Positions 2,752 to 56,322 of a stretch of 64,000 bases of DNA are shown in pieces (position 1 is the stretch's first letter; every line of letters starts with the position of its first letter). The notes below the pieces were generated by a model. That model saw only the letters and a list, made by a program, of their open reading frames with translations. It had not been told where the DNA came from and ran no database searches. A program made the position numbers and the translations under genes. Location of the stretch: positions 124,001 to 188,000 of IMG/VR virus record IMGVR_UViG_3300017917_002466; one strand, written 5' to 3'.

Positions 2752-3159
2752 TTATCCTTTTGGGTTGTAAGTATATGGCTGGTTCCACTTGCCGATATTG
2801 ATATGAGTGTACCAACCAACATCAAAAAAATCTACTTGGGCGTCACTGTTGTCGTGGTTGCCGACATTCATAGCCTCTATCAGTTCAGCCAGACAAGCCT
2901 TGGCCTGACCAGTGAAGTGCTCGTGGAACCAGTACTCATTGACTTGCAGGTGGCCGTCAAGCACTGTGCTTCGGTTGTTACGGTCGGCCTCAACCATCCG
3001 GTTGAAGTTACCCACAAAGTCAATTGGTCCTGACTTGATGTTCAGCACCAGAGTACTGTGGTGACGAACGGCCAGTGTGGCCTTGAGTCCGTACTTTCGG
3101 AGTATGGACTGGATGGCTGGGGTTAGTGACCGCTTGTTCTGCTGGCTCATGTAAGCCAT
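2752..3159 (-). CDS. phage protein resembling LPD29-like polyvalent-protein domain
   Basis: GNHDNSDAQVDFFDVGWY motif; own promoter and AAGGAG RBS. Confidence 0.55.
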   Translation of the reverse strand: MAYMSQQNKRSLTPAIQSILRKYGLKATLAVRHHSTLVLNIKSGPIDFVGNFNRMVEADRNNRSTVLDGHLQVNEYWFHEHFTGQAKACLAELIEAMNVGNHDNSDAQVDFFDVGWYTHINIGKWNQPYTYNPKG

Positions 3160-3505
3160 AGGTTACTCCTTTCTTACTAATTAATATACATTCGGAAGTT
3201 CAGACTGTCAAGTTTTATTTTTGTGACTTACCTACTCTTATCAAGCACCTTGAAAGCCAGTTCACTGAAGGAATGAACTGGAGTAACCACGGTCTATATG
3301 GTTGGCACATTGACCATATAATACCTTGTTCTTCATTTGACTTGACAAAGCCGGAAGAACTTGCTAAGTGTTTTCACTATACTAACCTTCAACCACTTTG
3401 GGCTAAAGATAACTTATCAAAAGGCTCCACTTAATTTACTCGGCTAAACCAGAAGACGACCTCGCCCTCGGGTCACTTTTAATATAATACAAAGTGGCCT
3501 GAATG

Positions 3506-3790
3506 TCAAGCCCTCTTTAGATTCTTTCGGTGAGACTGTGGGTAGTTAACTCTTAACCACTTCATCCATTTAACAGAGTCAATGGTTATGGTTCCAACCA
3601 CATTTACTTCCCCGTCTTCCCTTGCAAGCTTCGCTGCGTGGTATCTGGCCGCACTTACTGAATTGAGTCCCTTCCAGTCTCGCGAGTAGACTATTAAGCT
3701 TTCAATTCCGGGATACCACTCCCACTCGCCCTTTTCAGACAAGTAGTATGGCTGGCCACTAATGCAAACATAAGGAACGTAGAACTTCAT
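3506..3790 (-). CDS. hypothetical protein
   Basis: ORF, likely start MKFYVP. Confidence 0.55.
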   Translation of the reverse strand: MKFYVPYVCISGQPYYLSEKGEWEWYPGIESLIVYSRDWKGLNSVSAARYHAAKLAREDGEVNVVGTITIDSVKWMKWLRVNYPQSHRKNLKRA

Positions 3791-4074
3791 GTTAGGCTCT
3801 TTCAATTGTGATAAGGTGGAAGCCATTAAAGACTTTGTGGTTCTTTCGGACTATGAAGGAAGCCCAATCCAACTCAATCCGCTGACCAAGGAAAGCACCG
3901 AAGTCGACTCGGCCAAAGTGAGGAAGAACAAAGGAAGTACCAGCCGAAGCCCTTGTCAGCTTCTTCTGGACGATTGAGGAGAGAATGTGATTGAGAACTT
4001 TGAACATATCGTTCCCCTTTCTGTACATCTAATATAATACAAAGGGGCCTGAATGTCAAGCCCCTTTTTGTATT

Positions 4075-4186
4075 TGGTGGCAGCGGCTGGATTCGAACCA
4101 GCATCGGGACGACCACTACTTATCTAGAATGTTCGTGACCGTCAGGCACACCATTGGCCCTTTGTGTATTTGTCCTACACGCTGCC
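4075..4186 (-). ncRNA. tRNA-like RNA (112 nt) with non-canonical anticodon region
   Basis: Acceptor stem GGCAGCG/CGCTGCC + A + CCA; T-arm GCTGG-TTCGAAT-CCAGC; central part too long and branched for a standard tRNA. Confidence 0.7.
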
Positions 4187-4206
4187 AGTAAGCTTGTTGA
4201 AGTTGA

Positions 4207-4509
4207 TTACACAAACTCGTAGCACTCGACAGCCGGACCGTTCCGCATATTCTCACTGACAATCACAGCCTGAACCATCGGCCACTCGGCACGGTCGATG
4301 TTGCGCCACTTGGCGATGTAGGAAACATTCTTGGCGCAAGCTATCGGCTCGTCACAACACATTGAGCCAATCTTGTAGCCGTTCTTGTCCATGAACTTCT
4401 CAGCCTGACTCTCAGCCTCAAAGTCCTCGGTGGACTCAAAGCGGGCGATCATCACAGCCTTGCGACCAGTTTCCCTTGCGATCGTCTCAGCGGTTGACTT
4501 GTTGCTCAT
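4207..4509 (-). CDS. hypothetical protein
   Basis: ORF MSNKSTAE with AAAGG RBS and own promoter. Confidence 0.65.
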   Translation of the reverse strand: MSNKSTAETIARETGRKAVMIARFESTEDFEAESQAEKFMDKNGYKIGSMCCDEPIACAKNVSYIAKWRNIDRAEWPMVQAVIVSENMRNGPAVECYEFV

Positions 4510-4823
4510 TGATTGTTTTCCTTTCTGTACATTCAATATACATCAAGCGAGTCGGTTTGTCAAGCTCTATTTTTGGTATTTCCGTACAGACATAATACTT
4601 GATACTCTTCACCATCAGAGTAAGGAATCTTTTTATTTGACATTTCAGCAAAAACAAACCGAACACCTTGATTTCGAAGGTCTTGAGCAGCTGCTTGAAG
4701 GTCAGAAATTAACTCTTCTACCGAACCACCTACGCTTATTTCAACTTCTACTCTTCGCATATTCCCTCCTTTTGTACATATAATATACAACAAATGAGCT
4801 TGAAAGTCAAACTCTTTTTATAT

Positions 4824-5591
4824 TTAGTAACATCTAAGCAAGCGCTTTGTGTGCAGGGCCCCGGCGGGAAGGTGGCGTCCGTCAAGTGAATACGTCTCCA
4901 GTCGACCGGGGCGCACCGCGACCGGCGGTCTGTGGCGGCTGTCCAATACACCCGCCCTGGGCACCAGAGAAAACAATCCGGAAAGCGTACTGATACTGTG
5001 ATTGTCGTAGTTGCTCAACTGGATATAACAGGCGTCCGACTGCGGGAGATCGGTGCCCACGGTCCAGAGCCATGAACTGCCGCTGAGCCGTGCGGTCGTC
5101 AACGTCTGGAAATTGATACCGCCGTCGGTTGACAGTTCGACGCGCAGGTCGGCCTGAAGACCGATCTGCCAGGTAATCTCATACGTCGAACCCAATTCGA
5201 TATTCTCTCCGCCGGTAGGCGTCAGGACGAGAAATGGAACATCCTCCTGCACCGTTACCGATATACTGTCAACGACGGTAAACTCTCCGTCGTAGGCAGA
5301 CAACTGGAACACGTACGCTCCCGCCATCGAGAACACAACCAGAGACGACTTCGCGCCCGGAGCCCGGATATCGGCTCCGCCGGCAGGCCCGTCAACCTGC
5401 GTCCACTGATATTGCAGTTGTGCATTGAGCAGGCTGTCGTCCGTCGCAGTGGCGAAAAACCGGAAGGTCTGTCCAAGTCGAAACGTCGTATCGTGTCCGG
5501 CATTGACAACCGGCGGATTATTCTGAACGCCCCACACCCCGGACGACAGCATCAAAATACCCAGAATTGCGGAAAAACCGAGCCGAGTCAT
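4824..5591 (-). CDS. secreted PKD/Ig-like domain protein of bacterial type, possibly C-terminally truncated
   Basis: Signal peptide; NNPPVVNAGHD, YQWTQVDGP and GAYVFQLSAYDG PKD/REJ-like motifs; second Ig-like domain (PTGGE, LSTDGGINF); YSLDGR tail; GC-rich. Confidence 0.75.
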   Translation of the reverse strand: MTRLGFSAILGILMLSSGVWGVQNNPPVVNAGHDTTFRLGQTFRFFATATDDSLLNAQLQYQWTQVDGPAGGADIRAPGAKSSLVVFSMAGAYVFQLSAYDGEFTVVDSISVTVQEDVPFLVLTPTGGENIELGSTYEITWQIGLQADLRVELSTDGGINFQTLTTARLSGSSWLWTVGTDLPQSDACYIQLSNYDNHSISTLSGLFSLVPRAGVLDSRHRPPVAVRPGRLETYSLDGRHLPAGALHTKRLLRCY

Positions 5592-5621
5592 AAAACATCA
5601 CCCCCATTTAATTCACATTGC

Positions 5622-5718
5622 CTACAACGTTTACGCAATGGGCGAAGCGCACCGTCTACAAAAAAGTTTATCTTCCTCCTTACCACAAACGGTGCATTTT
5701 GCCCTTGCGCTGTTGTGT
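5622..5718 (-). repeat. attC-like site
   Basis: Minus strand ACACAAC agcgcaagggc...gcaccgt...acggtgc...gcccattgcgtaaac GTTGTAG. Confidence 0.8.
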
Positions 5719-5734
5719 GATGTGTTGCGAGTAC

Positions 5735-5881
5735 CTAAATGTTAATAGCTATTGTTGTACAAATAAACCCTGATAATAATCCAATCCCACTACCAGCAGA
5801 TGGAGGTAAATTAAAAAGAATGCTTATGCCACAACTAATGAAACATCCAATAACAAAACCAATAATCACACGACACAACAT
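5735..5881 (-). CDS. cassette-borne 48 aa membrane peptide
   Basis: AGGAGG RBS; MLCRVIIGFVIGCFISCGISILF..., two hydrophobic segments. Confidence 0.6.
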   Translation of the reverse strand: MLCRVIIGFVIGCFISCGISILFNLPPSAGSGIGLLSGFICTTIAINI

Positions 5882-5924
5882 AATACCTCCTTTAAAAATT
5901 TAAGAGCAACATTTTGCACAACGT

Positions 5925-6170
5925 TTACGCAACGGTAGATGTGTTGCGCTTACTTGGTTCACAAATATCATCTACAAACTTAAACTGACAATCGGGATAC
6001 CACTTGCACTTCAAACATTGGCGCAACATTTCTACCTTGCGGTGTTGTGTGTTGCGGAGGAAGGCTACCTCAGATTCCAGAGCAATTATGCGCTTTTGAC
6101 TACGCACACAAACCAACATTTGAAAAAAACCGATTGCCACCAAAACGATGATTGAAATTGAGTTAAGCAT
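5925..6170 (-). CDS. cassette ORF (TM, coiled coil, Cys-rich tail encoded in attC)
   Basis: AGGAG RBS; reads through attC 5917-6050. Confidence 0.65.
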   Translation of the reverse strand: MLNSISIIVLVAIGFFQMLVCVRSQKRIIALESEVAFLRNTQHRKVEMLRQCLKCKWYPDCQFKFVDDICEPSKRNTSTVA

Positions 6171-42565: not shown

Positions 42566-43456
42566 TCAATTACAAGCTATTATAGAAGGTTTATTAGCCA
42601 TTTCTTCTCCGACTCTCTTGTATTGGTCAAGAAATTGAACTCCGTCAAGCTTATCAATAGCCTTTGGAATAGCAATGTCATAGTAGCTCATTGAAATCTT
42701 TTTCTTTGAAGAATTACACATTGCCTGTAATCCATAGACTTGTTCTTGACGAACTTGTTCTCTGGCTAGTCCACCATCATCAATTTCAAGGAAAGAAAGA
42801 ATCTGACGAACAAATTTATACTTTTTAGCTTTATTGAATAAAATATTTTCATCAGAAAATCCACAACCAATAATATCAAAATGCCAATTTTCATTTGGCC
42901 AAAGAATGAAAGCATCAACAAGACCATAAGCAATAGGAATATTGGCTACTCCCATTCCACCATCCATCCATACGGATTTATTTTGTTCGTCAATCAATGT
43001 TCCGAAATAGAAAGGAGCAGCAAAAGACTTACATGTCGAAGTAACAAGATATTCTTGTCCATCCTTTTGTTCCCAAGACTTAAAGAAGTGATTTCTCTTG
43101 TCACAAAGATTAACAGAAGTTATTTGAACTTTTGTCAAACAATCAGCCATTTTTATCATTCCAATTTCTTTGACAAAAATTTCAATGAAGTGTTTTCTAT
43201 TATACATTGGAATTGGTGGAAGCCATTGTCTTTCAAATATCTTCTTGACCATACTTGGATAAATAGCTTCAAGATAATCCATTGTAATCTTTCCAGAAGC
43301 TATCATTGCGGCATTGATAGCCCCAACAGAGCTTCCTACAATCAAGTCATAATATTTGGAAAGAGGACCAACTTCAGCTTCTTTCTTTTTCAAAACTTGG
43401 GCTTGTGCGTAGCCTTTTACACCACCACCGCTTAGAATCATTATTCGTTTAGACAT
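42566..43456 (-). CDS. patatin-like phospholipase
   Basis: SGGGVKG, GSSVG, DGG motifs. Confidence 0.9.
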   Translation of the reverse strand: MSKRIMILSGGGVKGYAQAQVLKKKEAEVGPLSKYYDLIVGSSVGAINAAMIASGKITMDYLEAIYPSMVKKIFERQWLPPIPMYNRKHFIEIFVKEIGMIKMADCLTKVQITSVNLCDKRNHFFKSWEQKDGQEYLVTSTCKSFAAPFYFGTLIDEQNKSVWMDGGMGVANIPIAYGLVDAFILWPNENWHFDIIGCGFSDENILFNKAKKYKFVRQILSFLEIDDGGLAREQVRQEQVYGLQAMCNSSKKKISMSYYDIAIPKAIDKLDGVQFLDQYKRVGEEMANKPSIIACN

Positions 43457-43785
43457 TTTTTAATTCCTCTTTATCTTGATTAAAGTTTTCACATTTTTCT
43501 TTTAATAAATGTCCGCATTTTTCCCATTCAAAACAATTTTTACAACAAGAATTATTCCATTTTTCTCTTAAAGATGATGCACTTAGTTCAATCATTTCTA
43601 AAACAAATTTTTCACCTGGGTCTTTTCCTTTATTAATTCCATCAAAATATTTTGCATCATTCAAATATTTAATTTCTACTTTTATAAATCTTTGGTCTTT
43701 TTGAGACATTTTTGCTCCTTTTCATATAAATACTATATGAAGAAAAAATTAGGATAAACCCTAATCAAAAAGGAGTCAATTTTAA

Positions 43786-43899
43786 ATGAAAAATTATTCT
43801 ACATCTTTTATAAAAAGATCAAATATTATACATAAAAATAAGTATGAATATTCTGAAATTATTTATATTAATAATAAAACTAAAGTCAAAATATATTGA
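43786..43899 (+). pseudogene. N-terminal endonuclease remnant behind a TATAAATA promoter
   Basis: MKNYSTSFIKRSNIIHKNKYEYSEIIYINNKTKVKI; TATAAATA at about 43725; AAGGAG RBS. Confidence 0.6.
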
Positions 43900-43935
43900 A
43901 AATATTTTAATAAGTAAAATATTCTAAAGGCTTTA

Positions 43936-45240
43936 CTAAATTCTGTTATCTTCAAATCGGTCTAGAAAAGTTTTAAATCCCCACATCACAGGAGGATTAG
44001 AGTTTTTTGTACTCATAAGCCACAATACTTTACATTTTGGTTGGTGGGGAGGAGAAGCACAACCATCAGTATAAACTACCAATCCATCAACCTTTTCTTT
44101 ATCAGCTAAATTCATTATTTGCTCAAAGTCAGTTCCTCCCCTACCAAGACAAGTAAAACTCTTTCTGGCTTTTCTAAAGTTCTTTTCCACAATTTTTATT
44201 TCTGTATCAAACTCCACAAAAGTTATCTTACAATAGTGAAGTAGTTTATTCACAACACCAAAACCATATGCCAAATCTTCATCAGTCATTGAACCAGAAC
44301 TATCAACAGCAAAGATAACGTGTGGCATATAAACTCGTCTATAACCTGGGAGTTCAATATCCCAACGTCTATTCAAACGCATACGGCTACTAATACTTTT
44401 TCCTGTCAATACAGAAGCGCCAAATTTTCTAATAACATCTGAAGCTCTTACTTTTGGTTCAAGAGTCGCAAGAATTGATGCCTGTGCAGTACCAGTATAT
44501 CGTCCCCATTGTCTTGTCCTATGACGAACTTTATCAACGAAAGTCTTTATATCAGTATCAAATCCATTATTCTTTCCCCAACCCTGATTGCCATTACTAT
44601 TAGGGTCAGTATATTTCGTCATTGCTTCTTTTTCATTATCAAACTCTTGGAATCCATCACCATCAGCATTTTCATCTCGTTGGTCTTGTTCATCTTCAGT
44701 TTGAGAGATTACTTTTTGAACCATATCTTTCTTTTGTTCGTCAGACATTGACCCCCAAATCTTTTGAATTTGTTTATTGACCTTATCGGCTCTTTCTAAA
44801 AGTTCTCGGAAATATTCTTCAAAAGCTAAATTATCTTTCAAACCAAATCTTTTTGGGTCGGGAGTTATTTCATCAATTCCTTGGAGAAGTTTCTCAACAT
44901 CACCGTTTGAAAGTTGATTAATTGCTAAAGAAGAAGAAAGGTGAGCGATGTTTGCCGGTTCTTTCAGTCTGGTGGTGGGGTGACGAAGAAGCACACGCAT
45001 ACCTTCCGTATAAAGTACCAATTCAAGTTTTTCAAGAGAGATTGTAGTAATAAAGTTTGGGTTATACCTAAGAGATACTCGGTCTTGTCTAGTAACATCA
45101 ATACCCATTGTGTCATATTGTGGGTCTGGAATCTTATCCAACATTGACAAAGCACCAAATAAAACATTATCTTTTCTCCAAAGAGAAAAAATAACCTTAT
45201 CTATTTTTTGTTTGGCTCTTTCTATATTTTCATTATTCAT
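43936..45240 (-). CDS. DUF2201-type protein with C-terminal VWA domain
   Basis: DSSGSM MIDAS, GRGGTDF, YTDG. Confidence 0.85.
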   Translation of the reverse strand: MNNENIERAKQKIDKVIFSLWRKDNVLFGALSMLDKIPDPQYDTMGIDVTRQDRVSLRYNPNFITTISLEKLELVLYTEGMRVLLRHPTTRLKEPANIAHLSSSLAINQLSNGDVEKLLQGIDEITPDPKRFGLKDNLAFEEYFRELLERADKVNKQIQKIWGSMSDEQKKDMVQKVISQTEDEQDQRDENADGDGFQEFDNEKEAMTKYTDPNSNGNQGWGKNNGFDTDIKTFVDKVRHRTRQWGRYTGTAQASILATLEPKVRASDVIRKFGASVLTGKSISSRMRLNRRWDIELPGYRRVYMPHVIFAVDSSGSMTDEDLAYGFGVVNKLLHYCKITFVEFDTEIKIVEKNFRKARKSFTCLGRGGTDFEQIMNLADKEKVDGLVVYTDGCASPPHQPKCKVLWLMSTKNSNPPVMWGFKTFLDRFEDNRI

Positions 45241-45279
45241 TTAGAATATTCTTTCTATCAAATATAATATATAAATAAC

Positions 45280-45370
45280 AAACAGAAGATGACATTATTA
45301 GACTAAATCATTTTACTAACTTAGAGTTATTGACAGTAGAAGATCACAAGAAAATACATTCTGGTGATCT
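45280..45370 (+). pseudogene. HNH endonuclease remnant
   Basis: TEDDIIRLNHFTNLELLTVEDHKKIHSG. Confidence 0.55.
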
Positions 45371-45382
45371 TCTACTAAACGA

Positions 45383-46648
45383 TTAGCCTTTTAGTAACTC
45401 ATCAATGTCAGGATCGTTGAAATGGTTTTCCTCATCCTCTTTCTCTTTCGGTGTTTTCCCGTGAATTAGGTCTATAAAATCATCCACTAATCCTTTGATA
45501 TTACTGGAAAGTAATTTATCGGGCCACGATTTGTGATTCTCGGTTGTTGCTTCACTGATGTAGTCATAAAAATCACAGCGAAGTTCATTGGGAAGGCACT
45601 TGAGATATTGGTACACATTAAATGCGTACTTATCGGCCTGTTTCTTTCCAGTGGGACTTTCCATCTCTCCAAAGTACTGTTCTTCTTCCTCTTCAAGATG
45701 AATTGATAATTCAAGGTTTAGTAACAAAATTTCTTGGTTGGAACATTTCTTGACTTTTTCTTCCAAATCTTTTGTCCAGTTTGTTACGATACTTCCAGGA
45801 TTTATCCCCTTCTTCTGTTCCTTGATGAAAGCATAGAAAGCCGAAGATGCACTTTCTCCAATGATTCCAGCCGAAATATCCCTAAGTGTAACAAAGTCTT
45901 CTTCGTTCAAAATCTTTGGATTCTTCTTGATGATATTGCTCATCCTTACCCAAGAACGTCGGGAAGGATAGACTACGCCCATCTTTCCGTTAGATGGAGG
46001 GTCAAGGTGCAATGCTCCGAACTTGGCAATGAATCCGATAACAAGCTTATGAACCTTTGCATCAATAGCCCAGTAAATCCATTCCTTGCGTGAAGGAGCG
46101 AACCCATAAACATTGAATCGGTCAAAAAGGGCTGGGTCAAGCTCGGTAACCTGATATCCAAACTTATCGTCAAGAGGATTGATTGCAGCGATGATTCGGG
46201 TGCAATCAGGAAGCTTCAATCCGTTGAGTTGACGGTTGAGAGCCATATCCATAATGCACTGATAGACCTCGGGCTTTCCTCGGTTGAACTCATCAAGGAA
46301 AAGAACGAGCTTGGTATTATTGTCTCTCGGCCACCATTTTGGTGGTGCGAATTCTGTTATTTTCTGTGAAACTTCTTTTCCATCATAAATGAAAGTAACT
46401 ATAGTTCGATCTGGCAAACCAATCAAATCACCAGCATCAGCCATCTGGCCAAGGAAAAGCATAATGACGGCATACCCACGCTTCTCAAAATAAGCCTTCA
46501 TAAACTCGGATTTGCCGATACCGTGAATACCAACGGCCATAATGGCTTGGTCTTCTGGAGTCATTTCAAGAATGTTTATCCAGTCTTTTGCCTCAAGCTC
46601 ACGAACCATATCCAAGGAACCGTTTGAACCACCTTCAATCTTGGACAT
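45383..46648 (-). CDS. MoxR-like AAA+ ATPase
   Basis: GIHGIGKS Walker A, LFLDEFNR Walker B, LDPALFDRF. Confidence 0.9.
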   Translation of the reverse strand: MSKIEGGSNGSLDMVRELEAKDWINILEMTPEDQAIMAVGIHGIGKSEFMKAYFEKRGYAVIMLFLGQMADAGDLIGLPDRTIVTFIYDGKEVSQKITEFAPPKWWPRDNNTKLVLFLDEFNRGKPEVYQCIMDMALNRQLNGLKLPDCTRIIAAINPLDDKFGYQVTELDPALFDRFNVYGFAPSRKEWIYWAIDAKVHKLVIGFIAKFGALHLDPPSNGKMGVVYPSRRSWVRMSNIIKKNPKILNEEDFVTLRDISAGIIGESASSAFYAFIKEQKKGINPGSIVTNWTKDLEEKVKKCSNQEILLLNLELSIHLEEEEEQYFGEMESPTGKKQADKYAFNVYQYLKCLPNELRCDFYDYISEATTENHKSWPDKLLSSNIKGLVDDFIDLIHGKTPKEKEDEENHFNDPDIDELLKG

Positions 46649-47339
46649 TATGAACCCCTTTCAATTGGTGTTACTTATGAAGCTCTTCGTCTATTTCTTC
46701 TTCGTACTCTTCATCTTCTTCAAGACTATCAAGGTCTATCTTTCTAAGGTAATCTTTTACCTTCTGTCTACTTTTCTTTTGAGACTTGCCGACTTTCTCC
46801 ATTCCATAGTTGTCAGCGTCATAATAGTTTTCACGGAAAGTCTTACTCATTTGATTAGGCTCCTTTTCCCTTTCTTACTCTTTTGAAAAAGCAACGAGTA
46901 CATTGCGTTAAATTGTTTGCATCAGCAGGCTGAATGAAATATTGGTTGCAGAATTTACAACGACAAATCTTCCCAGTCCACATAATGCGGATACGTTCAA
47001 AAATGTTATAGTGCTTTGGTATTGTTCCAAACAAAGAAAACTTCTTGAGCCAGCATTGTATTGGATTCTTGATTGATAATTCGTATTCATTGATTTCTTG
47101 GAAGACATTGCATTCTTTGACTTGGTCAAAAAGCATACTGAAGTGTTCAAAACTGCCATCCCCTTTATGTAAGAAGTGGCAAAAACCATTCTCTTGATGT
47201 GGTTTGTCTTTTTGAATTGACCAATATGGGCAAGTTCCATCACTATCCCAACAATATATTCCCTGTGGAATATTCTCAATTTTTCTTTCTTTCATACTTT
47301 CAATATACATCTGTTTGCGAAAAAGTCAAGTAGTAAAAT

Positions 47340-47476
47340 CATAAATATTTATAGAAGTTAAGAGACAGCGACTGATCCTCGTTTCTTTGCCAGTACAAAG
47401 ATTATCTTAACTTCATCTACACAAACCGTACTGGAGGTTCTATGATAGTTTCTAAAACAATTCTAATAAAAGAGTT
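47340..47476 (+). pseudogene. leader RNA copy 5 plus minimal HNH remnant
   Basis: ccagta/tactgg pseudoknot; ATG 47442 MIVSKTILIKEF resembles MILSKTV...IKDF ends of 24660..25343. Confidence 0.7.
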
Positions 47477-48051
47477 TATGAATTTATAACACGAAAAGCA
47501 TCAACAACAAATCTAATTTGATATTTACAATCGCTTATTGCGTTATGTTTCTGATCTTTGTCATCTGAATATTTACTTGTTGATATTTTTGAAAGCCAAG
47601 TTATTGTTCTACAATCAAATATATGCTTATAACTCCAAGGAGTTATAAGATTATATTCATTATAAGCTTGATTTAAAAGAGGAATATCAAAACCATTGCC
47701 CCAAACCTTAAAATTCTCTACAAGATTATTAGAACAAAAATCATTAAGTAAATTCAAACATTCCAATAAACTAATATTCCTATATGCTTCACTTTGTTCT
47801 TTTCTTACATTTTCGGGTTGGTTAAACCAAAATTTAATAGAACCCCATTCAATGTTTCTATTTGTTTGAGTTTCAATAATTGGATAAATTTCAAACTCTT
47901 TCCCCAATGTTCCATCTGTAATATTAAAACAAACTGCTCCAATACTTAAAACTACTGCATTCGTTTGAACTCCAAGAGTTTCAAGGTCTATCATAAGATG
48001 ATGTAGCTTCTTACTTTCTGCGGCCGGTACTGCGTTTATTTCTTCTGACAT
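47476..48051 (-). CDS. DEDD 3'-5' exonuclease (exonuclease VIII/Rv2179c-like)
   Basis: MIDLETLG, WGNG.D, DCRT, HNAISDC. Confidence 0.85.
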   Translation of the reverse strand: MSEEINAVPAAESKKLHHLMIDLETLGVQTNAVVLSIGAVCFNITDGTLGKEFEIYPIIETQTNRNIEWGSIKFWFNQPENVRKEQSEAYRNISLLECLNLLNDFCSNNLVENFKVWGNGFDIPLLNQAYNEYNLITPWSYKHIFDCRTITWLSKISTSKYSDDKDQKHNAISDCKYQIRFVVDAFRVINS

Positions 48052-48595
48052 CTGTAGTCCTTTCTCGGAGCGCGTCAAAGAATGCATCCTCGCCATAATC
48101 GTCGTCACAATCTTCTTTACAAACATTCGTTTTCTTTACCTTTACAGGCTTCTCTTTGGATTCAAGTTCCTTTATTCTATTTCTAAGCCTTTCTATTTCT
48201 TCCTCATATCGTGAAACATCTGAGTTAGCGTGACCAACAACGGTCTTTCCTTTCTCTACAATCACTGGCTTGAGGACTTGAAAATTATCGTGGAATGAAT
48301 TCTTATTCTCATTTATCATATCTAATCCTTTATGAAGTCCATCTTCTTGCTTCTACGTTTCAGTATCATCCATCCTGTGCGAATGACAGAGAATCCCATC
48401 ACAAGTACAGTCAATATTGCTATTGATAGTTTCACAATGATAAGAGCATTGCTGTCTTGGTCGTCTATCTCAATCATGTGTTACCTTCTTTATCTCTTTC
48501 AACACAATAGCATAAATAAAGACCATAAAAAAGTACCAAACCAATACCACCAACTATTACAATAACAAGAGAAGCTATTAACCATTGTGGCAATA

Positions 48596-49579
48596 TCATA
48601 GATAATTTTTTCTGGCTATTTCAATAGCCCTTTCAACTACAGTCTTCACATTGCATCCGTAAAGACCGGCACAACTGAAGCTGTTCAACTCCATTACCGA
48701 AAACTTATCTTGAGCATTCTTACAAATATCAACTGTGTACATCGGGTCGGGCTGATATACTTTAGCAGTCGCCTTCGCAAGCTCCAATGCCTGTTCCTCA
48801 AAGGAAGGAGAATAGTCTGATTCACTTTCCTTCTTGTATTGACTACCCGTAATGATTTCACCCTCAGCAGCAATGAATCTCCACTCAGCCACGATTCTAT
48901 CTTCATGACCAACCGGCCGAGCAAGAAGCAGTATATCTTCTTCCTTGGTTCCTTCACGAACCCAGAACCAATCCGAAGACCAGTATGGTTCATTTACTAT
49001 AAAAACCATACCAGTAAAAGGTTTCAATCCAGAGCTTGGTCTAATGAAGATTCGGCCTGTCTGTGGTTCCCCTATTGACTCTATGTATTTTTCAATACCT
49101 TTCTCTACGTTTATCCTTGAATCAAACAAACAGTAACCATTGAACAATGGGATTCCTGCGCTTTGAAGAATTGGGTAATACCGGCAACATTCGTAGTTTT
49201 CAACAGTAAGCCACGGTCCGGGCTTCCAATTAGTCTGCTTCTTAATCTGAAGCGCAAAGTTTATAGAAGTTTGAGTGAGTACGAAATCATCCTTGTCAAT
49301 GAAAGACAAGTCCATTCCTTCTATCGGAATGTACTTCTCAACGTGAACATCACATCCTTGTTTCTTGGCTTCTTCAGCCAAATCACCAAAGCGATTGTCA
49401 GGATGAAAGTCTTCTATAAACCATCTTGGATTAATCATTTGATATTTCCCATTTCTATCCTTTTCTATAATATAATATGTAACTCCAAGTTTGTCAAGAG
49501 CTTTCTTCCAAATTTCTGTTTCTTGACGAAGACATTCGGATTTCCAGACTGGAAAGCCTTCTATGATGAATTTAATCAT
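48596..49579 (-). CDS. ATP-grasp domain protein (DUF4343/R2K-like)
   Basis: FIRPSSGLKPFTG, EWRF, VDI, VMELNSFSCAGLY. Confidence 0.8.
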   Translation of the reverse strand: MIKFIIEGFPVWKSECLRQETEIWKKALDKLGVTYYIIEKDRNGKYQMINPRWFIEDFHPDNRFGDLAEEAKKQGCDVHVEKYIPIEGMDLSFIDKDDFVLTQTSINFALQIKKQTNWKPGPWLTVENYECCRYYPILQSAGIPLFNGYCLFDSRINVEKGIEKYIESIGEPQTGRIFIRPSSGLKPFTGMVFIVNEPYWSSDWFWVREGTKEEDILLLARPVGHEDRIVAEWRFIAAEGEIITGSQYKKESESDYSPSFEEQALELAKATAKVYQPDPMYTVDICKNAQDKFSVMELNSFSCAGLYGCNVKTVVERAIEIARKNYL

Positions 49580-49753
49580 TTGGCTTCCTTAAATATTATG
49601 CAACCACAATACTTACATCCACAAGGATACATTTCTGCATAAGTATCAAAGTGTCGGTAATAAGGATGGCCGCAAGTACAGACTCTATCATCCCCGTAGT
49701 TAGGATTGTAATGTCTATCAGTTAATACTCTCTTTGTAATGATATATGGCTTC

Positions 49754-49945
49754 TCAGGCTTTTTCATTCTTCAATTCCTTCTTGGCCTGCTTCTCCAAAG
49801 CATCCCACTTCTTTTGGTCAGCTACGATTTGAATTGCTTGACCCATTTCCTCAAGGACTTTCATTGAAGCATGAGAGCCTTGGACGATTTGTTTTCCACG
49901 CCTCATATTCAAATCCTTACGCATTACTATTACTTGTTTGACCAT
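49754..49945 (-). pseudogene. truncated Pth2-type peptidyl-tRNA hydrolase
   Basis: MVKQVIVMRKDLNMRRGK..QGSHAS is the Pth2 N-terminus; remainder absent. Confidence 0.65.
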
Positions 49946-49946
49946 A

Positions 49947-50300
49947 TTATAGTTTCTCCCAAAGGAAAGGAACATACTGTGCTTGAATTCCATAATCCTC
50001 AAAGAGCTTAATCATCAATTTTGCGGCTGGACGGTTAATTGAATGAACGAAAATCTGATTCGGAACTCTGTCTCGGTTCTGAACCAACCACTTCACAACT
50101 CCATATCCGGTATTATCACCGGCTAGTACATATGTCTTACCACCAAGGTCGTGGTCAAGCATCAACACATCAAATTCAAAGGACTCCAAAGCAGCAATAC
50201 AATCTTTTGAAGTTGTAGTAAAGACTACATCGTTTCCGATAAGCTTCTGCTGAAATGTCTTGGTCCTTTCTGGACAGTCTTCAAGAATTAATATCTTCAT
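49947..50300 (-). CDS. cyclic-phosphate processing receiver domain protein
   Basis: ILILED, LDHDLG, TGY, VHS.N motifs. Confidence 0.75.
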   Translation of the reverse strand: MKILILEDCPERTKTFQQKLIGNDVVFTTTSKDCIAALESFEFDVLMLDHDLGGKTYVLAGDNTGYGVVKWLVQNRDRVPNQIFVHSINRPAAKLMIKLFEDYGIQAQYVPFLWEKL

Positions 50301-50301
50301 A

Positions 50302-51126
50302 TTACTCCTTGTCTACATCAACCCATTTCTGAATATAGTTTCTGTCTTGTGTGAAGATAGGAATTTCAGTATCAATAACATATTCTGTTCTTATTGTAGG
50401 ATTTCCAAGTATCTGTAGTCTATCTTCTTTTGATTTAGGAAATCCATCTTTATCATCCAAGTTATATGTGAGTCCATCTTTAATACAAACACTTCTTTTA
50501 TAGACGCAAGTTCCCCTTTTCTTGTGAGTTTCTGTATCATTCCAGTTGATACCTTTCTGTGAGAAAAGCATTTCCTGAATTGCTTCACAAGACTTATGGT
50601 CAAGTTCCTTGTGAGAGAAGTGGGCTCTTCCAACCATCTGAATAGAGTTGCGAGTACAGTCCTGCTGTCTCCAAATTATCACATTAACAACATCATCTTT
50701 CGGAACGTTAAATGCTCTGGCATCAAACAAAGCTGGCTTTTTATCATATCTTTCAGGAAATTTAGCCATAAACTCGTGATTAAAGAAAGCAGTTGCCATT
50801 GAAGCCGCAACAGACTCAACTTTACTTTTACGATAGTCAAACCAAGCACAGGTTTCAATTCTTGTATAATCAGTTAAAAGTAGCGTAATTTCATCGCTTT
50901 GAGTATAACCGAACGAACAACCTTCAATATTCTTTACAAGAGCTTGAGTTGTTCTTTGCATACATTCAATAAGATTATCGTCAAAAGGTCTATTCATTCC
51001 TCTTGTTAAAGTATGAAAAGCGCACCCATCCAAACGAATAATAACTGGTACGCGTCTAGTCAAATATATTTCGGTTGCCTTTTCATATTCTTTACATCTA
51101 TCGCCTAATGATCTTTTGTCTGACAT
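50302..51126 (-). CDS. tRNA(His) guanylyltransferase Thg1-like protein
   Basis: IRLDG.AFH, YTQSDEI, FDARAF, WRQQD..RNS, GINWND. Confidence 0.9.
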   Translation of the reverse strand: MSDKRSLGDRCKEYEKATEIYLTRRVPVIIRLDGCAFHTLTRGMNRPFDDNLIECMQRTTQALVKNIEGCSFGYTQSDEITLLLTDYTRIETCAWFDYRKSKVESVAASMATAFFNHEFMAKFPERYDKKPALFDARAFNVPKDDVVNVIIWRQQDCTRNSIQMVGRAHFSHKELDHKSCEAIQEMLFSQKGINWNDTETHKKRGTCVYKRSVCIKDGLTYNLDDKDGFPKSKEDRLQILGNPTIRTEYVIDTEIPIFTQDRNYIQKWVDVDKE

Positions 51127-51181
51127 AGATACTCCTTGGTAATATAATATGGTCGCGGCTAGTTTGTCAACTAGCCACAAC

Positions 51182-52108
51182 CTATTTGGTGAGAAGAGCT
51201 TCCAGTTTGTCAAGACGCTCCCAAACATCTTTAACAGAAATGTACTCTGTAGTCTGTTTTTTCATTCCACTCTCACTACCATACCATTGTTCAATAGCAT
51301 TAGCGAGAAGAACTTTAAGTTCTCCTGTTCTTGGTTGTGGGGAAATTGTGGTTTGATTAAGAGATTTCTTTTCAAGAATATCCAATCTTTCAAGAGCATA
51401 CTTCTCAAACCTTTCCCAAGTTCCCCAAGTACCTTCTCTCATACTTTTGGCTTCTTCTTTATTATTCATCAAATCAATAGTTCCGTTATCCAAAACCTGA
51501 TTGATTTGGTCAATGAGCCTCAATATTTGAGAAGCTTGTTTAACATCCATTCCAAACTGTTCAAGCATAAATTGTCTCTTAGGGTTTTCGGTTTTACCTC
51601 TTTTAATATCATTTCTCATACGATGAAGCTGTGCAAAAGCATAACCCTTAAAAGCCATTACTGTTCTAAGAGATAAAAACTTCTCAGCATTATCTCTTAG
51701 CATCCAAGCAATATCTGTACCAAAGGTAACCAAGTGTCTTCTAACAAAAAGACATTCAATAAGATTTGGTGAACCTTTAATTCCAGTAAGATAAAAAAAT
51801 CTAACTAAACTATTCCACTCTCCTTCAACATCAGTCTTACCATCAGGAGTAAGAATTCTACTTTTTTCTCCTTTGACTTCTTTACTTTCAAAATTGGGAA
51901 CATTATCAAAACCAATTACATATCCGTACTTTTGAGGAAAAAGATGGACTTCTTGTGGCATAACTAATGCGACAATATCAATATCTGATTGCGGAGTATT
52001 AAGTCCATAAGCTTGGCTTCCGACAATACACTCATAAAGTAAATTTTCTCTAATCCAAAGTTCTTGTTTTTGAAATTTTTCTTGAACAAATAAATCCGTG
52101 TAAATCAT
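51182..52108 (-). CDS. DNA polymerase beta superfamily nucleotidyltransferase
   Basis: GSQAYGLNTPQSDID, PNLIE, FKGYA..Q. Confidence 0.85.
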   Translation of the reverse strand: MIYTDLFVQEKFQKQELWIRENLLYECIVGSQAYGLNTPQSDIDIVALVMPQEVHLFPQKYGYVIGFDNVPNFESKEVKGEKSRILTPDGKTDVEGEWNSLVRFFYLTGIKGSPNLIECLFVRRHLVTFGTDIAWMLRDNAEKFLSLRTVMAFKGYAFAQLHRMRNDIKRGKTENPKRQFMLEQFGMDVKQASQILRLIDQINQVLDNGTIDLMNNKEEAKSMREGTWGTWERFEKYALERLDILEKKSLNQTTISPQPRTGELKVLLANAIEQWYGSESGMKKQTTEYISVKDVWERLDKLEALLTK

Positions 52109-52982
52109 TATATCCTTCCTTTTTGAAAACCTTTATCTTTTCATTTCGTTGTTTCGGAATAGGACATCTTTCAAATCCATAAATCAACCATTGGCTTTGA
52201 CACCACTCTTCATCACGACTATCCATATCCCAGTATGGACAAACTATTTTCCCAACTGAACATTTATGTTTCTTCATAAATCTTCTTTCCTTTGTCTATC
52301 GCAAAAGTTTCAATCCATGAACCAGATACTTCCTTTGAAGCTTCCTTTGCTTTCTTCTTGGTTGAATACACTCCATAAATGGACTGTGGATTGAACTGGC
52401 AACAGTAGAACATGACTATGTAGACTTTCTTCATTTATTTTCCCCTTATAAGTCTTCCAACACTTTGCCATTTCTTTACGAAGTTTGCAATCAGTGATAT
52501 AACCAAAACCAAGATGCTTACTACACCGTTTCTTGTAAAGACCATTAACGTCATTACACTGCAGTTCCTGACTGGTATGCTGATAAGGACAATGAAGTTC
52601 CTCAATCGGGAGAGGCTTCTCACCATTAAGCCAATCCTTGTAAGCGACTCCAAACTTTGAGAAGTGAATAGTTTTTCCTTCTATAGTTTAATTCTTTTTC
52701 TTCCAAATTCCAGTACTAAAACAATTATTACACAAAATCTTCATTGGTCGACCAACCCAAGCATGAAATATATCGCTTGGCTTTACTTCAAGAGCCATCC
52801 ATCCACCGTCCAGTTCAAAATTTGAATCCCAATGAGTTTCTAGTTTGCGACCACAACAGCAACAGAAATGAACAATGCGAATGCCTTTATCTTTTATAGA
52901 TTGGACTCTGGCGGTTCTTTGTAGCCTTCGGTCCTCGGCAGTTTCAATCCGTCCGATATTTTCATCTGTGCCTTCAAACATT

Positions 52983-53816
52983 TTATTGACACTTTTCGTT
53001 TTCGTCCAGAATGAGATTGATAGCTTTTCCAATTCTGCTGACAAGAGGAATCACAGCATCAACAGTTTCCTTCTTCAAGTTGTCAGCATACTTGTCAATG
53101 TATTCGTATGTGTTCTTTGTACCAGCCTTCAAACCAAACATCCTCATAAGTACGGCTGCTCCGAACTCTGCGACAATCTCTTGGTTAGAATCTTGACCAG
53201 CCTTGATTGCTCCCTGCACCTTCTCGTCTGCGGCATGGACAAGTTCGTGAAAAAATGCCTGCTGGTCGTCCGTTGCCATCACAATTTCTTTGCGTTCAGG
53301 TGAGAAGTATGCATAGAAAGAAGGGTTATCAAATCCCTGCCTGACCTTCATCCCCCAATTTTTTGCGACCTTCTCACAGAGGAACTGTGGCATTTCCTTG
53401 TCAACCTTGTAGTCTACATCTTTCCCTTCAGTCTTTTCCACTCCCCAAACTGCGATAGGGTTGAAGCCCACCAAAATCGGAATCTTCTTTTCCTTTCCAT
53501 CCTTATCCAGTACAGGCTTCCCGTCGTTGTCAAGGACTGGCTTCAGCCAAAGCTTCGGGGCGATGATACAGAAGTTCCCCGCCTTCGTAACCTTGCGTCC
53601 AACCTTGAACCAAGCCCTCGGGCCTCTTGCGTCAAAAGTACCGTGACGCATCATAATCAGTCGGTTCAGGATTGACCAGTTGTCAGAAGGAATGTCTATA
53701 CCTCTGCGGAACATAGACTTCGCCACAGTCTCCAAAGACTCTGGCTCCTTGAACATCTTCAACAGCCCTTCAATTTCCCCTCGCACCTTGTCGTTGGACA
53801 ACATACTTCTGGCCAT
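52983..53816 (-). CDS. ArdC-like antirestriction protein (ssDNA-binding plus zincin domain)
   Basis: WS..N.L, W...GRKV.K, FFHELVH, EIVAE.GA. Confidence 0.7.
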   Translation of the reverse strand: MARSMLSNDKVRGEIEGLLKMFKEPESLETVAKSMFRRGIDIPSDNWSILNRLIMMRHGTFDARGPRAWFKVGRKVTKAGNFCIIAPKLWLKPVLDNDGKPVLDKDGKEKKIPILVGFNPIAVWGVEKTEGKDVDYKVDKEMPQFLCEKVAKNWGMKVRQGFDNPSFYAYFSPERKEIVMATDDQQAFFHELVHAADEKVQGAIKAGQDSNQEIVAEFGAAVLMRMFGLKAGTKNTYEYIDKYADNLKKETVDAVIPLVSRIGKAINLILDENEKCQ

Positions 53817-53875
53817 ACAAACCTTCCTTTCTTATGATTATAATATACATCAAAGGAAAGAAAATGTCAAGAGGA

Positions 53876-53912
53876 AAATAAAAAAGATTGCCGGGCTTAA
53901 GACCCGGCAATC
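53876..53912 (-). terminator. intrinsic terminator
   Basis: agattgccggg-cttaaga-cccggcaatct next to an A-tract. Confidence 0.75.
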
Positions 53913-53988
53913 TCCAGTCCGTGAGTGGTTTGGGACGCTCAAGCAAGAAGCGCTAGCGTACTTGCCTGCTGTGTTGCTCCCGCCTTGT

Positions 53989-55188
53989 TCACTTCGTGTT
54001 TCCTGCTCCTTCAACACCCAAGTCAAGCGCAAGGTCTTTGGCTGTCTTGGCTGTCAGGAGATTGACAAGTTCATTAGCCCCTGAAGCCGACCTGCTATTA
54101 CCTTCACCCATGACAACAGTCGGAACCCAGTTACCAGCATAACCCTTGATAGCTTCAGCATATGCCTTGTTGATTTCAACAATTGCCTCAATCTTCTGTT
54201 CAAGGGCTCCGTTAGCCTGCATAACAAGCCTCTTATATGATGCCTCACCTTCTCCACGAAGGATGTTTGCACGCTTCTCCTGCTCGGCGGTCTTTGCTTC
54301 AAGTGTAGCAACTTCAAGCTTCTGCTGAGCTTCTGTTACTGCCGTTGCTTTAATTACTTCTTGATCCCACTTTGCCTTGGCTGCATCGGCCTCTCCGTTC
54401 TTGGCAACAGTGATAGCCCTCTGCTCGGCCTTCTTGGCTTCTGCTATGGAAGTTTGAACGTCCATTGTAATCTGTTGCTGTTGCTTAATCTGGTCTTCAA
54501 CAGCCTTGTCATACGGAAGCTGGTCAATCGCAAAGTTGAAGGTACGGATTCCGAAGTCCTTGATGGCTGACTCTTCCTGACGGGCAAGAAGTCCACTACT
54601 ATCTTTGACAATCTCAACCAAAGTTACAGTCTTCTCTGCACCTGTCATTTGGTCATTGGTCTTAACTTCTTTAGAGATAGTCTTGTACACACCATTGGAA
54701 ATCTGGTCTTCTACATATGAGATAAGGTAGTTGCGCTTCTCGGCATAAGACTCCTTGGAACTCATAAGAGGGCCAGTCATATAGATTGCCTTGTTCACAA
54801 TAGTCTGAATCAACTGAGTTTCAAGGGATGCCTGATTACTAAACTTATTCTGAACCTTGGTAAGATAATCCTTATTCAGTGGCATTTCATACTGAACTGA
54901 TCCCATCATTGTTCCGTGTCCACCATCATTGAAACGAACGGAAGTCTTGAACTGATAGATGGAACGCTTCTTGTACTTGGTGACCTTTCCGAAACCTTGC
55001 CACTTGATACCTGCATCGGTATACCAAGCGAGCTTTCCTGCGATGGGTGACTGAATACAAGCGATTTCGTCAGTATCTACGTTCTCAAAGATGTTACCCG
55101 CAAAAGCGATAACAATGATACCGACGACTACGATACTAACGATAGATGCAATTACTCCAACCGGATTGCGCTTCAATTGCTGGGTCAT
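53989..55188 (-). CDS. SPFH/Band 7 domain membrane protein
   Basis: N-terminal TM, VRFNDGG, coiled coil with EA repeats. Confidence 0.8.
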   Translation of the reverse strand: MTQQLKRNPVGVIASIVSIVVVGIIVIAFAGNIFENVDTDEIACIQSPIAGKLAWYTDAGIKWQGFGKVTKYKKRSIYQFKTSVRFNDGGHGTMMGSVQYEMPLNKDYLTKVQNKFSNQASLETQLIQTIVNKAIYMTGPLMSSKESYAEKRNYLISYVEDQISNGVYKTISKEVKTNDQMTGAEKTVTLVEIVKDSSGLLARQEESAIKDFGIRTFNFAIDQLPYDKAVEDQIKQQQQITMDVQTSIAEAKKAEQRAITVAKNGEADAAKAKWDQEVIKATAVTEAQQKLEVATLEAKTAEQEKRANILRGEGEASYKRLVMQANGALEQKIEAIVEINKAYAEAIKGYAGNWVPTVVMGEGNSRSASGANELVNLLTAKTAKDLALDLGVEGAGNTK

Positions 55189-55457
55189 AAACTAACTTCT
55201 CCTTTTGGTTTTGATTGTTTTACGAATTTCACGAGCTTCTTTTTCCAAATCAACTTCAGAGGATTCCTGATTGAGTTCGCGAATTTCACTCTGAATCTTC
55301 TGTTCCTTTTGGAACATTGGGAACATCTTGGTTCCTTTTAGTGACGGGACTAACATTTGAGTGACAATTAGAATCATCACCGTCACGCATACAGCGAACT
55401 CAAACAGTGAAAGAAAGAACATACCTTGACCTCCTTTCTTTTTTAAAACTTTAAATA

Positions 55458-56312: not shown

Positions 56313-56322
56313 ATTAAACCTT

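Follow-up and report, generated by a model that had tools for sequence, protein, structure and literature searches.

Among the small RNAs described so far, the closest analogues in kind of the element reported here are RNA C (species 1 RNA, encoded by rnaC) and RNA D of bacteriophage T4, both phage-encoded stable small RNAs. The biological role of T4 RNA C is still unknown (PMC3014915). The element of our study is a tRNA-like RNA of 112 nucleotides (nt) encoded on the minus strand of a freshwater jumbo phage. It lies in a stretch of 64,000 nt (positions 124,001 to 188,000 of IMG/VR virus record IMGVR_UViG_3300017917_002466), called the window in the following, and DNA of this window is present in a pond metagenome run. 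The complete record comprises 253,664 base pairs (bp) with direct terminal repeats and contains the element as a single copy. We propose, with a probability of about 50%, that the element derives from a tRNA gene and encodes a non-decoding tRNA-like RNA, which acts via the half consisting of acceptor stem, T-arm and CCA end. The parts of this proposal differ in strength. That the element is real and derived from a tRNA is practically certain, and it is probable that it is not a decoding tRNA. That it is made as a discrete, processed and functional RNA has somewhat better than even chances.

T4 RNA C (139 nt) falls into the same size class as the RNA predicted for our element. The likeness is one of architecture: the GGUUCGAAUCC core recurs in a canonical T-arm, the closing stem resembles an acceptor stem, and long hairpins of non-tRNA type replace the D and anticodon arms. 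Beyond the T-arm there is no homology (12.9 bits with R1, a covariance model built from the single sequence of the element). T4 RNA C is located within a tRNA cluster; its acceptor stem is imperfect, a CCA is not encoded and the arm spacing of a tRNA is lacking, whereas the element stands alone in an early-gene region on the strand opposite to the tRNA genes, has a perfect stem as well as the CCA and keeps the full tRNA frame. Stable tRNA-like RNAs of phages are thus already known from T4 RNA C and D; new here are the perfect upper half of a tRNA-Met, the encoded CCA, the full frame and the position outside a tRNA cluster.

Mimics which use the tRNA-processing enzymes of the host via the acceptor/T half and not for decoding are known from eukaryotic viruses, i.e. 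the 3' tRNA-like structures of plant viruses, which form the aminoacylated 3' ends of the genomes, and the vtRNAs of gammaherpesvirus 68. Hosts, polymerases and architectures differ from our case, and these RNAs have no homology to the element.

Architecture and folding of the element

Read as their reverse complement, window positions 4075-4186 give the RNA, which runs from 4186 to 4075, so that an RNA position equals 4187 minus the window position (Table 1). A first-pass annotation had described a perfect 7-bp acceptor stem, an encoded CCA and a canonical T-arm. All of them are present on the minus strand; the acceptor stem contains no mismatch, the CCA is part of the gene and the T-arm includes the G53:C61-type pair. 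The base directly before acceptor G1 (position -1) is a U, and this is where cleavage by RNase P would be expected. The short hairpin following the acceptor strand, also seen in the first-pass annotation, is predicted with high probability. Compared with a real D-arm it is offset by 2 nt toward the 5' end. The GG opening its loop GGACAAA is a candidate for the contact between D-loop and T-loop at the elbow.

The segments of the RNA have lengths of 7, 15+4, 17, 36, 5, 17, 7 and 4 nt. Subtraction of the 36-nt arm from 112 nt leaves 76 nt, and the frame is that of a 76-nt tRNA whose anticodon arm occupies 27-43 and whose variable loop has 5 nt; a 36-nt arm is inserted into this frame at the 43/44 junction. 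This five-arm layout is the layout of a long-variable-arm tRNA. With 36 nt the extra arm (41 nt for the variable region) is about twice as large as usual in class II tRNAs; its loop contains the palindrome UCUAGA. The loop of the 27-43 arm (RNA 32-38) reads AAUGGUG, having A33 and U37 and hence neither U33 nor a purine at position 37, and folding predicts that it shrinks to a tetraloop.

In place of the anticodon arm, the first-pass annotation had proposed a stem (ggg.cca/tggtcgtccc) enclosing two small hairpins. This part of the description did not hold. The best fold of the RNA has -37.1 kcal/mol; forcing the enclosing stem gives -31.2 kcal/mol, a cost of about 6 kcal/mol, and its pairs (GGG27-29 with CCC79-81, and CCA with UGG) reach a probability of about 0.001 in the ensemble. 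The ensemble has the arms 27-43 and 44-82 side by side, not enclosed, beneath an acceptor stem with a probability of about 1. For the third arm there are two competing registers of about 0.5 each, a 9-bp helix (44-52/71-79) and an irregular helix spanning 46-82, and an extra arm is present in all low-energy folds. The whole RNA differs from shuffled sequences with z = -2.0.

A 15-nt direct repeat, CAAATACA[A/C]AAAGGG, was found on the minus strand at 4158-4172 (RNA 15-29) and 4062-4076 (RNA 111-125), 96 nt apart. The first copy lies inside the element and the second spans the CCA end and the trailer. The two copies are perfect matches to the pattern; with 2 mismatches allowed, 0.9 matches would be expected in the whole window. 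The repeat is not a general motif upstream of the promoters. A rearrangement from which the element arose may have left it behind as a scar.

Table 1. Coordinates of the element, its transcription unit and other genes mentioned in the text (window positions unless genome is indicated)
Feature	Position	Strand	Remarks
Promoter of the element's unit, sigma-70 type	4535..4563	-	TTGACA, 17-nt spacer, TATATT; 11/12 consensus matches
Small upstream open reading frame (ORF)	4207..4509	-	100 amino acids (aa) + stop; stop 20 nt before the element
Acceptor stem, 5' strand	4180..4186	-	RNA 1-7, GGCAGCG; pair probability 0.998-1.0 for six pairs
D-arm-like hairpin	4165..4179	-	RNA 8-22, UGUA-GGACAAA-UACA; 4-bp stem, 7-nt loop; pair probability 0.95-0.97
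Arm at canonical anticodon-arm position	4144..4160	-	RNA 27-43, 17 nt; pair probability ~0.93
Extra arm, variable region	4108..4143	-	RNA 44-79, 36 nt; 9-bp helix + 18-nt loop, or register 46-82
Canonical T-arm	4086..4102	-	RNA 85-101, GCUGG-UUCGAAU-CCAGC; pair probability 0.99
Acceptor stem 3' strand, discriminator A, CCA	4075..4085	-	RNA 102-108 CGCUGCC; A109; CCA 110-112
Terminator-like hairpin	4041..4067	-	7 nt past the CCA; the -35 box of the following promoter (4031-4059) overlaps with its loop and 3' arm
Patatin-like phospholipase	42566-43456	-	
VWA/DUF2201	43936-45240	-	
MoxR-type AAA protein	45383-46648	-	
R2K ATP-grasp	48596-49579	-	
Thg1-like	50302-51228	-	Overlaps RlaP
RlaP	51182-52108	-	
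SPFH/Band 7	53989-55188	-	
Nicotinate phosphoribosyltransferase	56323-57489	-	
RtcB RNA ligase	genome 110249-111463	-	
CCA-adding-type nucleotidyltransferase	near genome 197.6 kb		

Origin of the upper half

A generic signature of the upper half (T-arm, 7-bp closure 93-200 nt upstream, NCCA) occurs about 0.075 times per simulated 253-kb genome and is, taken alone, only moderately improbable. Judged from the sequences, a chance origin of the upper half is nevertheless excluded, because RNA 1-9 and 85-112, comprising the acceptor stem, U8 G9, the T-arm, A73 and the CCA, agree in every base with a real tRNA-Met(CAU) gene of a gammaproteobacterial metagenome-assembled genome (MAG; locus L212). All 37 bases compared, including the CCA, are unchanged, and both genes share the next three bases past the CCA (AAT). 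Thus the upper half evidently is that of a tRNA-Met(CAU)-type gene. At the protein level the L212 contig has no likeness to the phage.

The 24-nt string of T-arm and acceptor strand has exact matches in 11 GTDB genomes, i.e. ten Chloroflexi MAGs, nine of them labelled as Dehalococcoidia or its orders, and the gammaproteobacterial MAG. ARAGORN was applied to 8 of the 11 loci and called a tRNA-Met(CAT) at the string match in six scanned loci; in L205 the sole tRNA-Met call lies elsewhere than the match, and L203 and L210 gave no call.

The element compared with decoding tRNAs and other tRNA-like RNAs

No anticodon had been assignable in the first-pass annotation, and our searches agree. ARAGORN reported 0 genes at the element with default, intron and tmRNA settings, and Rfam at gathering scores gave no match to a tRNA, transfer-messenger RNA (tmRNA) or Y RNA. 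At E<=10 the best Rfam match was the selenocysteine tRNA (tRNA-Sec) with 17.2 bits (threshold 47), followed by the permuted-tmRNA model with 14 bits; there was no match to RF00005 (tRNA) or to YrlA. An ordinary long-variable-arm tRNA, mentioned in the first-pass annotation, is not what ARAGORN and Rfam detect here. The other tRNAs of the phage score 32-66 bits, including a tRNA-like gene (genome 92121-92199) which had 32 bits in Rfam and no ARAGORN call.

Of the attributes of a canonical tRNA, the element has the 7-bp acceptor stem, the 5-bp T-stem, a T-loop of the UUCRANY type and the 3' discriminator, and like a class II tRNA it carries an extra stem-loop between anticodon arm and T-arm, with the other arms of canonical length. 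It lacks a D-arm at 10-25, as pairing of 10-13 with 22-25 is impossible and only 8-11 pair with 19-22, an anticodon loop with U33 and a purine at 37, and an above-threshold score in the tRNA detection models.

One could still regard the element as an aberrant working tRNA of class II type, in which 27-43 would be the anticodon arm (with UGG as anticodon by its place in the frame) and the 36-nt arm an oversized variable arm. The exactly canonical spacing fits this idea, and the best matches of model R1 elsewhere are class II tRNAs, with tRNA-Leu genes scoring highest. Gain of a variable arm by class I tRNAs is known from the nev-tRNAs of nematodes (PMC3333845). In the same phage, tRNA-Lys(UUU), tRNA-Asn(GUU) and tRNA-Ile(UAU) (genome 87819-87903, 87915-88001 and 94338-94422) are class I tRNAs of 85-87 nt with an expanded variable region, and C33 replaces U33 in two tRNA genes (88037-88112 and 88545-88633). 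Like these tRNAs and those of class II, the element has five arms with the extra arm before the T-arm and the remaining segments of canonical length. However, A33 and U37 are incompatible with the usual geometry of an anticodon loop, which moreover, by the predicted fold, shrinks to 4 nt, the D-arm is not in register, and the element stays below the tRNA models (no RF00005 match, 17 bits for the best match of the clan, tRNA-Sec, versus 32-66 bits for the other tRNAs of the phage). Trimming of the extra arm or of other segments did not help, for none of five deletion variants was called by ARAGORN at default or 90% stringency. A tRNA-Pro(UGG) is already present in the phage, too. We consider a decoding role quite improbable.

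Similarly, an intron-containing or split tRNA, one of the options of the first-pass annotation, would have to be cut and rejoined into a normal tRNA, e.g. by the RtcB ligase that the phage encodes, and the length of 76 nt remaining without the 36-nt arm would suit such a product. But the deletion variants restored no callable cloverleaf, ARAGORN -i was negative at default settings, neither a group I nor any other intron family was found with Rfam, no bulge-helix-bulge motif was noticed by eye, and the insert is located in the variable region instead of the anticodon loop. This makes splicing a very improbable explanation.

The general idea of a tRNA mimic, put forward in the first-pass annotation, fits our evidence, while the specific forms suggested there do not. 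A miniature tmRNA, serving ribosome rescue, would share with the element the combination of acceptor stem, T-arm and reduced D region on an otherwise non-tRNA RNA, as in the tRNA-like domain of tmRNA; the sole internal ORF (AUG33 to UAG69-71, 12 codons) and the 14 bits with the permuted-tmRNA model could be taken in the same sense. In contrast to tmRNA, the element has C3:G70 instead of G3:U70, no pseudoknots and no conserved tag ORF, since the stop codon UAG is changed to UGG in a related copy (X3, see below); it is one third the size, and ARAGORN -m as well as the Rfam tmRNA models were negative. A Y-RNA-like molecule with a Ro-type protein partner has as its model YrlA (Rfam RF02553), a non-coding RNA whose tRNA-like module mimics the tRNA elbow. 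Here the topology is wrong, for the acceptor-like stem of YrlA is loop-closed and its ends form the Ro-binding stem, whereas the ends of the element form the acceptor stem with a free ACCA. No YrlA match was obtained, and a TROVE/Ro gene (PF05731) is absent from the complete phage genome (control genomes were positive; a Ro protein encoded by the host is possible). Within the reach of these searches, either molecule is hardly credible as an identity of the element. Also a decoy for anticodon nucleases appears implausible, as the loop with A33 and U37, predicted to be closed, offers no mimic of an anticodon loop as bait.

Two interpretations unrelated to mimicry were rejected. The element is not an attP-type copy of a tRNA 3' end, given that the 5' strand and U8 G9 are present, no tyrosine integrase (PF00589) was found and the genome has direct terminal repeats. 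For an antisense RNA, complementarity of the interior to the phage genome does not go beyond chance.

Transcription unit and genomic context

The element belongs to a unit in which a promoter with a directly following conserved leader, TGTACAGAAAGG, the 100-aa ORF, a spacer of 20 nt, the element and a terminator-like hairpin follow one another. The element has no promoter of its own, and there is no terminator between it and the upstream ORF. For the upstream ORF no Pfam or PHROG match was found, and the flanking ORFs have no family assignment.

Near-perfect TTGACA-N17-TATATT sites are strongly enriched in the window (46 versus 1.9 expected, 25-fold), mostly on the minus strand, and the leader follows ten of the 46 promoters. 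A minus strand so dense in promoters is the pattern that an early region read by the host polymerase would be expected to have. Several -35 boxes lie within the terminator-like hairpin of the preceding unit (e.g. 4041-4067 and 3496-3512).

This arrangement bears on the possibility that the element is a cis-acting module for end processing, which recruits RNase P and 3' trimming to the 3' end of the upstream-ORF mRNA and releases the RNA as a by-product. In eukaryotes, the 3' ends of some long RNAs are defined or stabilised by tRNA-like structures. The position 20 nt past the stop codon without own promoter or intervening terminator is as one would expect of such a module, and all determinants for RNase P, i.e. 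the stack of 7 + 5 bp, the RCCA end and U at -1, are there. However, homologues of the same ORF in relatives do without the element and have another gene directly after them, a tRNA-like structure is missing from the ends of all the other 40-odd promoter units of the window, and the tRNA frame kept below the upper half would be left unexplained. We regard a function restricted to end processing as improbable.

On the 3' side of the element follows a minus-strand ORF (3795-4028), which is preceded by a separate promoter and leader and comprises 71 or 78 aa, according to which start is taken. With either start it is missing from a collection of 15 billion proteins, and no homologues were found. 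It may be an uncalled gene, or not a gene.

Distribution and divergence

The sole relatives seen are two diverged copies in a freshwater metagenome of another study (2022; run X3). The first X3 contig (350 nt) corresponds to window positions 3862-4063 with 5 differences in 202 bases and to 4074-4164 with 7 differences in 91; 57 other bases replace the 10 nt of 3' trailer located before the hairpin, and the copy adjoins the same downstream gene as the element. The second contig shares this hairpin and continues from it into a 3' end that has diverged (ACCA, acceptor strand CACUACC, T-stem strand CCAUC). For RNA 54-82, the part for which differences were listed, there are exactly three substitutions (U61C, A62G and A70G), and the extra-arm loop contains all of them. 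The palindrome survives these changes (UCUAGA to UCCGGA), and so, equally, do the pairs 61:70 (U-A to C-G) and 62:69 (A-U to G-U). Coming from one comparison, such pair- or palindrome-keeping substitutions are a hint, not proof. The element thus appears to be kept in at least three diverged phages, yet as an accessory cassette.

Homologues of the upstream ORF with 47-86% identity are found in freshwater assemblies. The likeness of these relatives to our phage stops about 14 nt past the ORF stop and is followed by another small gene where the contig extends. In one related-phage contig (L198:602-925), a stretch of 320 nt without called gene lies 3' of the upstream-ORF homologue. It is G+C-rich and has complementary ends and a strong terminator just before a consensus promoter. 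A structured RNA is conceivable here; Rfam had no match for the stretch at E<=1.

A blastn search of window 3000-6000 against 50,697 phage records gave no match, and the element is missing from all 63 loci in which homologues of the gene at 2752-3159 are located. A metagenome scan with a loose pattern yielded 104 tRNA-Tyr, 3 tRNA-Met and 1 CUA tRNA among the 122 matches listed, and no homologue among them. The two downstream ORFs have no homologues, and nearly all neighbouring proteins are singleton 90% clusters.

The main rival of our proposal is a decaying tRNA pseudogene, i.e. a former tRNA-Met-type gene with degenerate D and anticodon arms and an insertion, and without function. We regard it as possible, if unlikely. 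The non-canonical D-arm and anticodon loop as well as the 15-nt repeat with its hint at a past rearrangement are in line with such a history, and so are several observations that speak against a functional RNA in general. The element diverges more than the flanking gene and promoter (7/91 versus 5/202; Fisher p = 0.053), which argues, as far as this sequence comparison goes, for weak constraint or fast change. The interior (RNA 23-84) is thermodynamically unremarkable, being no stabler than shuffled sequence (z about 0). In every relative that was fetched the element is absent after the upstream-ORF homologue; therefore it would be dispensable for the lineage. It is equally absent from the IMG/VR and GTDB genomes, as judged by exact and degenerate patterns for the 3' end and region 71-101, and model R1 found nothing but ordinary tRNAs in 32 loci, 46 related phage records, the tRNA cluster of the phage itself and the tRNA region of T4. 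No RNA run, as represented by assembled contigs, contains the locus. Of the acceptor and T stems of the diverged X3 copy the visible part covers the 3' strands, and the genes for RNA-end enzymes, to which we refer below, are all at least 46 kb away from the element without physical link. Moreover, the roles we prefer for the RNA are inferred. Comparative support is thin.

On the other hand, decay would hardly leave 37 bases of the upper half unchanged compared with a bona fide tRNA in a phage whose own working tRNAs are very divergent, and would not be expected to keep all arm lengths of the tRNA frame exactly. Within its early unit the element has a precise place, with a stop codon on one side and a terminator-like hairpin on the other. 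Two diverged relatives have kept it, and the visible substitutions are of the pair- or palindrome-preserving kind.

tRNAs and RNA-end enzymes of the phage

About 40 tRNA genes are located at 87-95 kb (genome 87395-95663) on the strand opposite to the element. Nearly all have an encoded CCA; neither a tRNA-Met nor a tRNA-Cys is part of the set. Within the cluster we observed a circularly permuted tRNA-like module (genome 91581-91646, plus strand; L213:4582-4647) with the order T-arm, acceptor 3' strand, 9-nt loop, acceptor 5' strand and D-arm. In a search of 301 nt it matched the tRNA-like part of Rfam YrlA with 33.8 bits (threshold 69; E = 7e-6), and no long closing stem is predicted for it.

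A tRNA with the amber-reading anticodon CUA is encoded at genome 108207-108280 (minus strand), 2 kb from the RtcB gene. Recoding of TAG was considered and rejected: among the three stops, read-through of TAG gives the smallest gain in ORF length, and TAG ends 20 of 203 long frames.

The statement of the first-pass annotation that the phage encodes Thg1 and other enzymes acting on RNA ends proved correct, with Thg1-like and RlaP genes in the window and genes for RtcB and a CCA-adding-type enzyme elsewhere in the genome (Table 1). The Thg1-like and RlaP genes are part of a minus-strand run (42566-57489) of genes suited to conflict with the host.

Possible function

A stack of acceptor stem and T-arm, the elbow and the CCA end suffice for recognition by RNase P, CCA enzymes, T-loop modification enzymes, EF-Tu and several toxins. 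In the element these parts of the upper half are all intact, including the GG of the D-like loop. We therefore suggest the following course of events. The host RNA polymerase would transcribe the element early, together with the 100-aa ORF. RNase P would cut at G1, reading only the acceptor/T stack and the RCCA end, and the 3' trailer would be trimmed back to the encoded CCA, giving rise to a stable RNA of 112 nt. Its acceptor stem, elbow and CCA end would be available to proteins whose reading of a tRNA is confined to them.

Which proteins these might be is suggested by bacterial toxins which modify CCA ends or read or extend acceptor stems (10.1101/2021.04.30.441581; 10.1101/2024.07.05.602228; PMC10435456). 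The toxSAS enzymes, which pyrophosphorylate the CCA end, have been linked to phage defence; reading of the acceptor stem is known for one of them (10.1101/2021.04.30.441581; 10.1101/2024.07.05.602228; PMC10435456). A phage equipped with CCA-adding, Thg1-like, RlaP and RtcB enzymes is plainly exposed to damage of tRNA ends. We therefore favour among the conceivable roles that of a decoy or sponge for host toxins which attack tRNA ends or acceptor stems, with the enzymes of the phage keeping the decoy usable. As a specific role this is a tentative preference of rather low probability.

The second choice would be a carrier of amino acids outside translation, for which the RNA would have to be charged. 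The best candidate for this charging would be leucyl-tRNA synthetase (LeuRS), since its requirements are A73 and the elbow of D- and T-loop and neither the anticodon nor the variable arm; leucylation persists in a minimal tRNA-Leu from which both the anticodon arm and the variable arm are missing, provided that A73 and the D/T contacts are retained (PMC9976931). Despite the origin of the upper half, methionyl-tRNA synthetase should not charge the element, because it requires the CAU anticodon (PMC9976931). More sober alternatives to decoy and carrier are a mere processing signal and a dead gene.

A bolder version, which we consider rather doubtful, sees in the element a dedicated early mimic of the acceptor end, which absorbs host immune toxins directed at acceptor stems or CCA ends or takes their modifications as a sacrificial target, or else serves as charged carrier. 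Candidate targets are pyrophosphokinases of the toxSAS/CapRel type, nucleotidyltransferases of the MenT/AbiE type and acceptor-stem nucleases, and the CCA-adding, Thg1-like, RlaP and RtcB enzymes of the phage would regenerate the RNA.

In any case, a letter-perfect upper half of a tRNA-Met with encoded CCA and exact arm spacing above a non-decoding lower half is an unusually clean case. If the element is merely decaying, it would indicate that tRNA genes erode from the bottom up, the half recognised by RNase P and CCA enzymes persisting. If it is expressed, it would be a small and easily tested substrate for studying mimicry of the upper half against defences directed at tRNA ends, or aminoacyl carriage. 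Should the dedicated mimic or the carrier be real, it would represent a new class of phage RNA acting in counter-defence or as a cofactor, and perhaps the puzzle which T4 RNA C has posed for 50 years would find its explanation, too.

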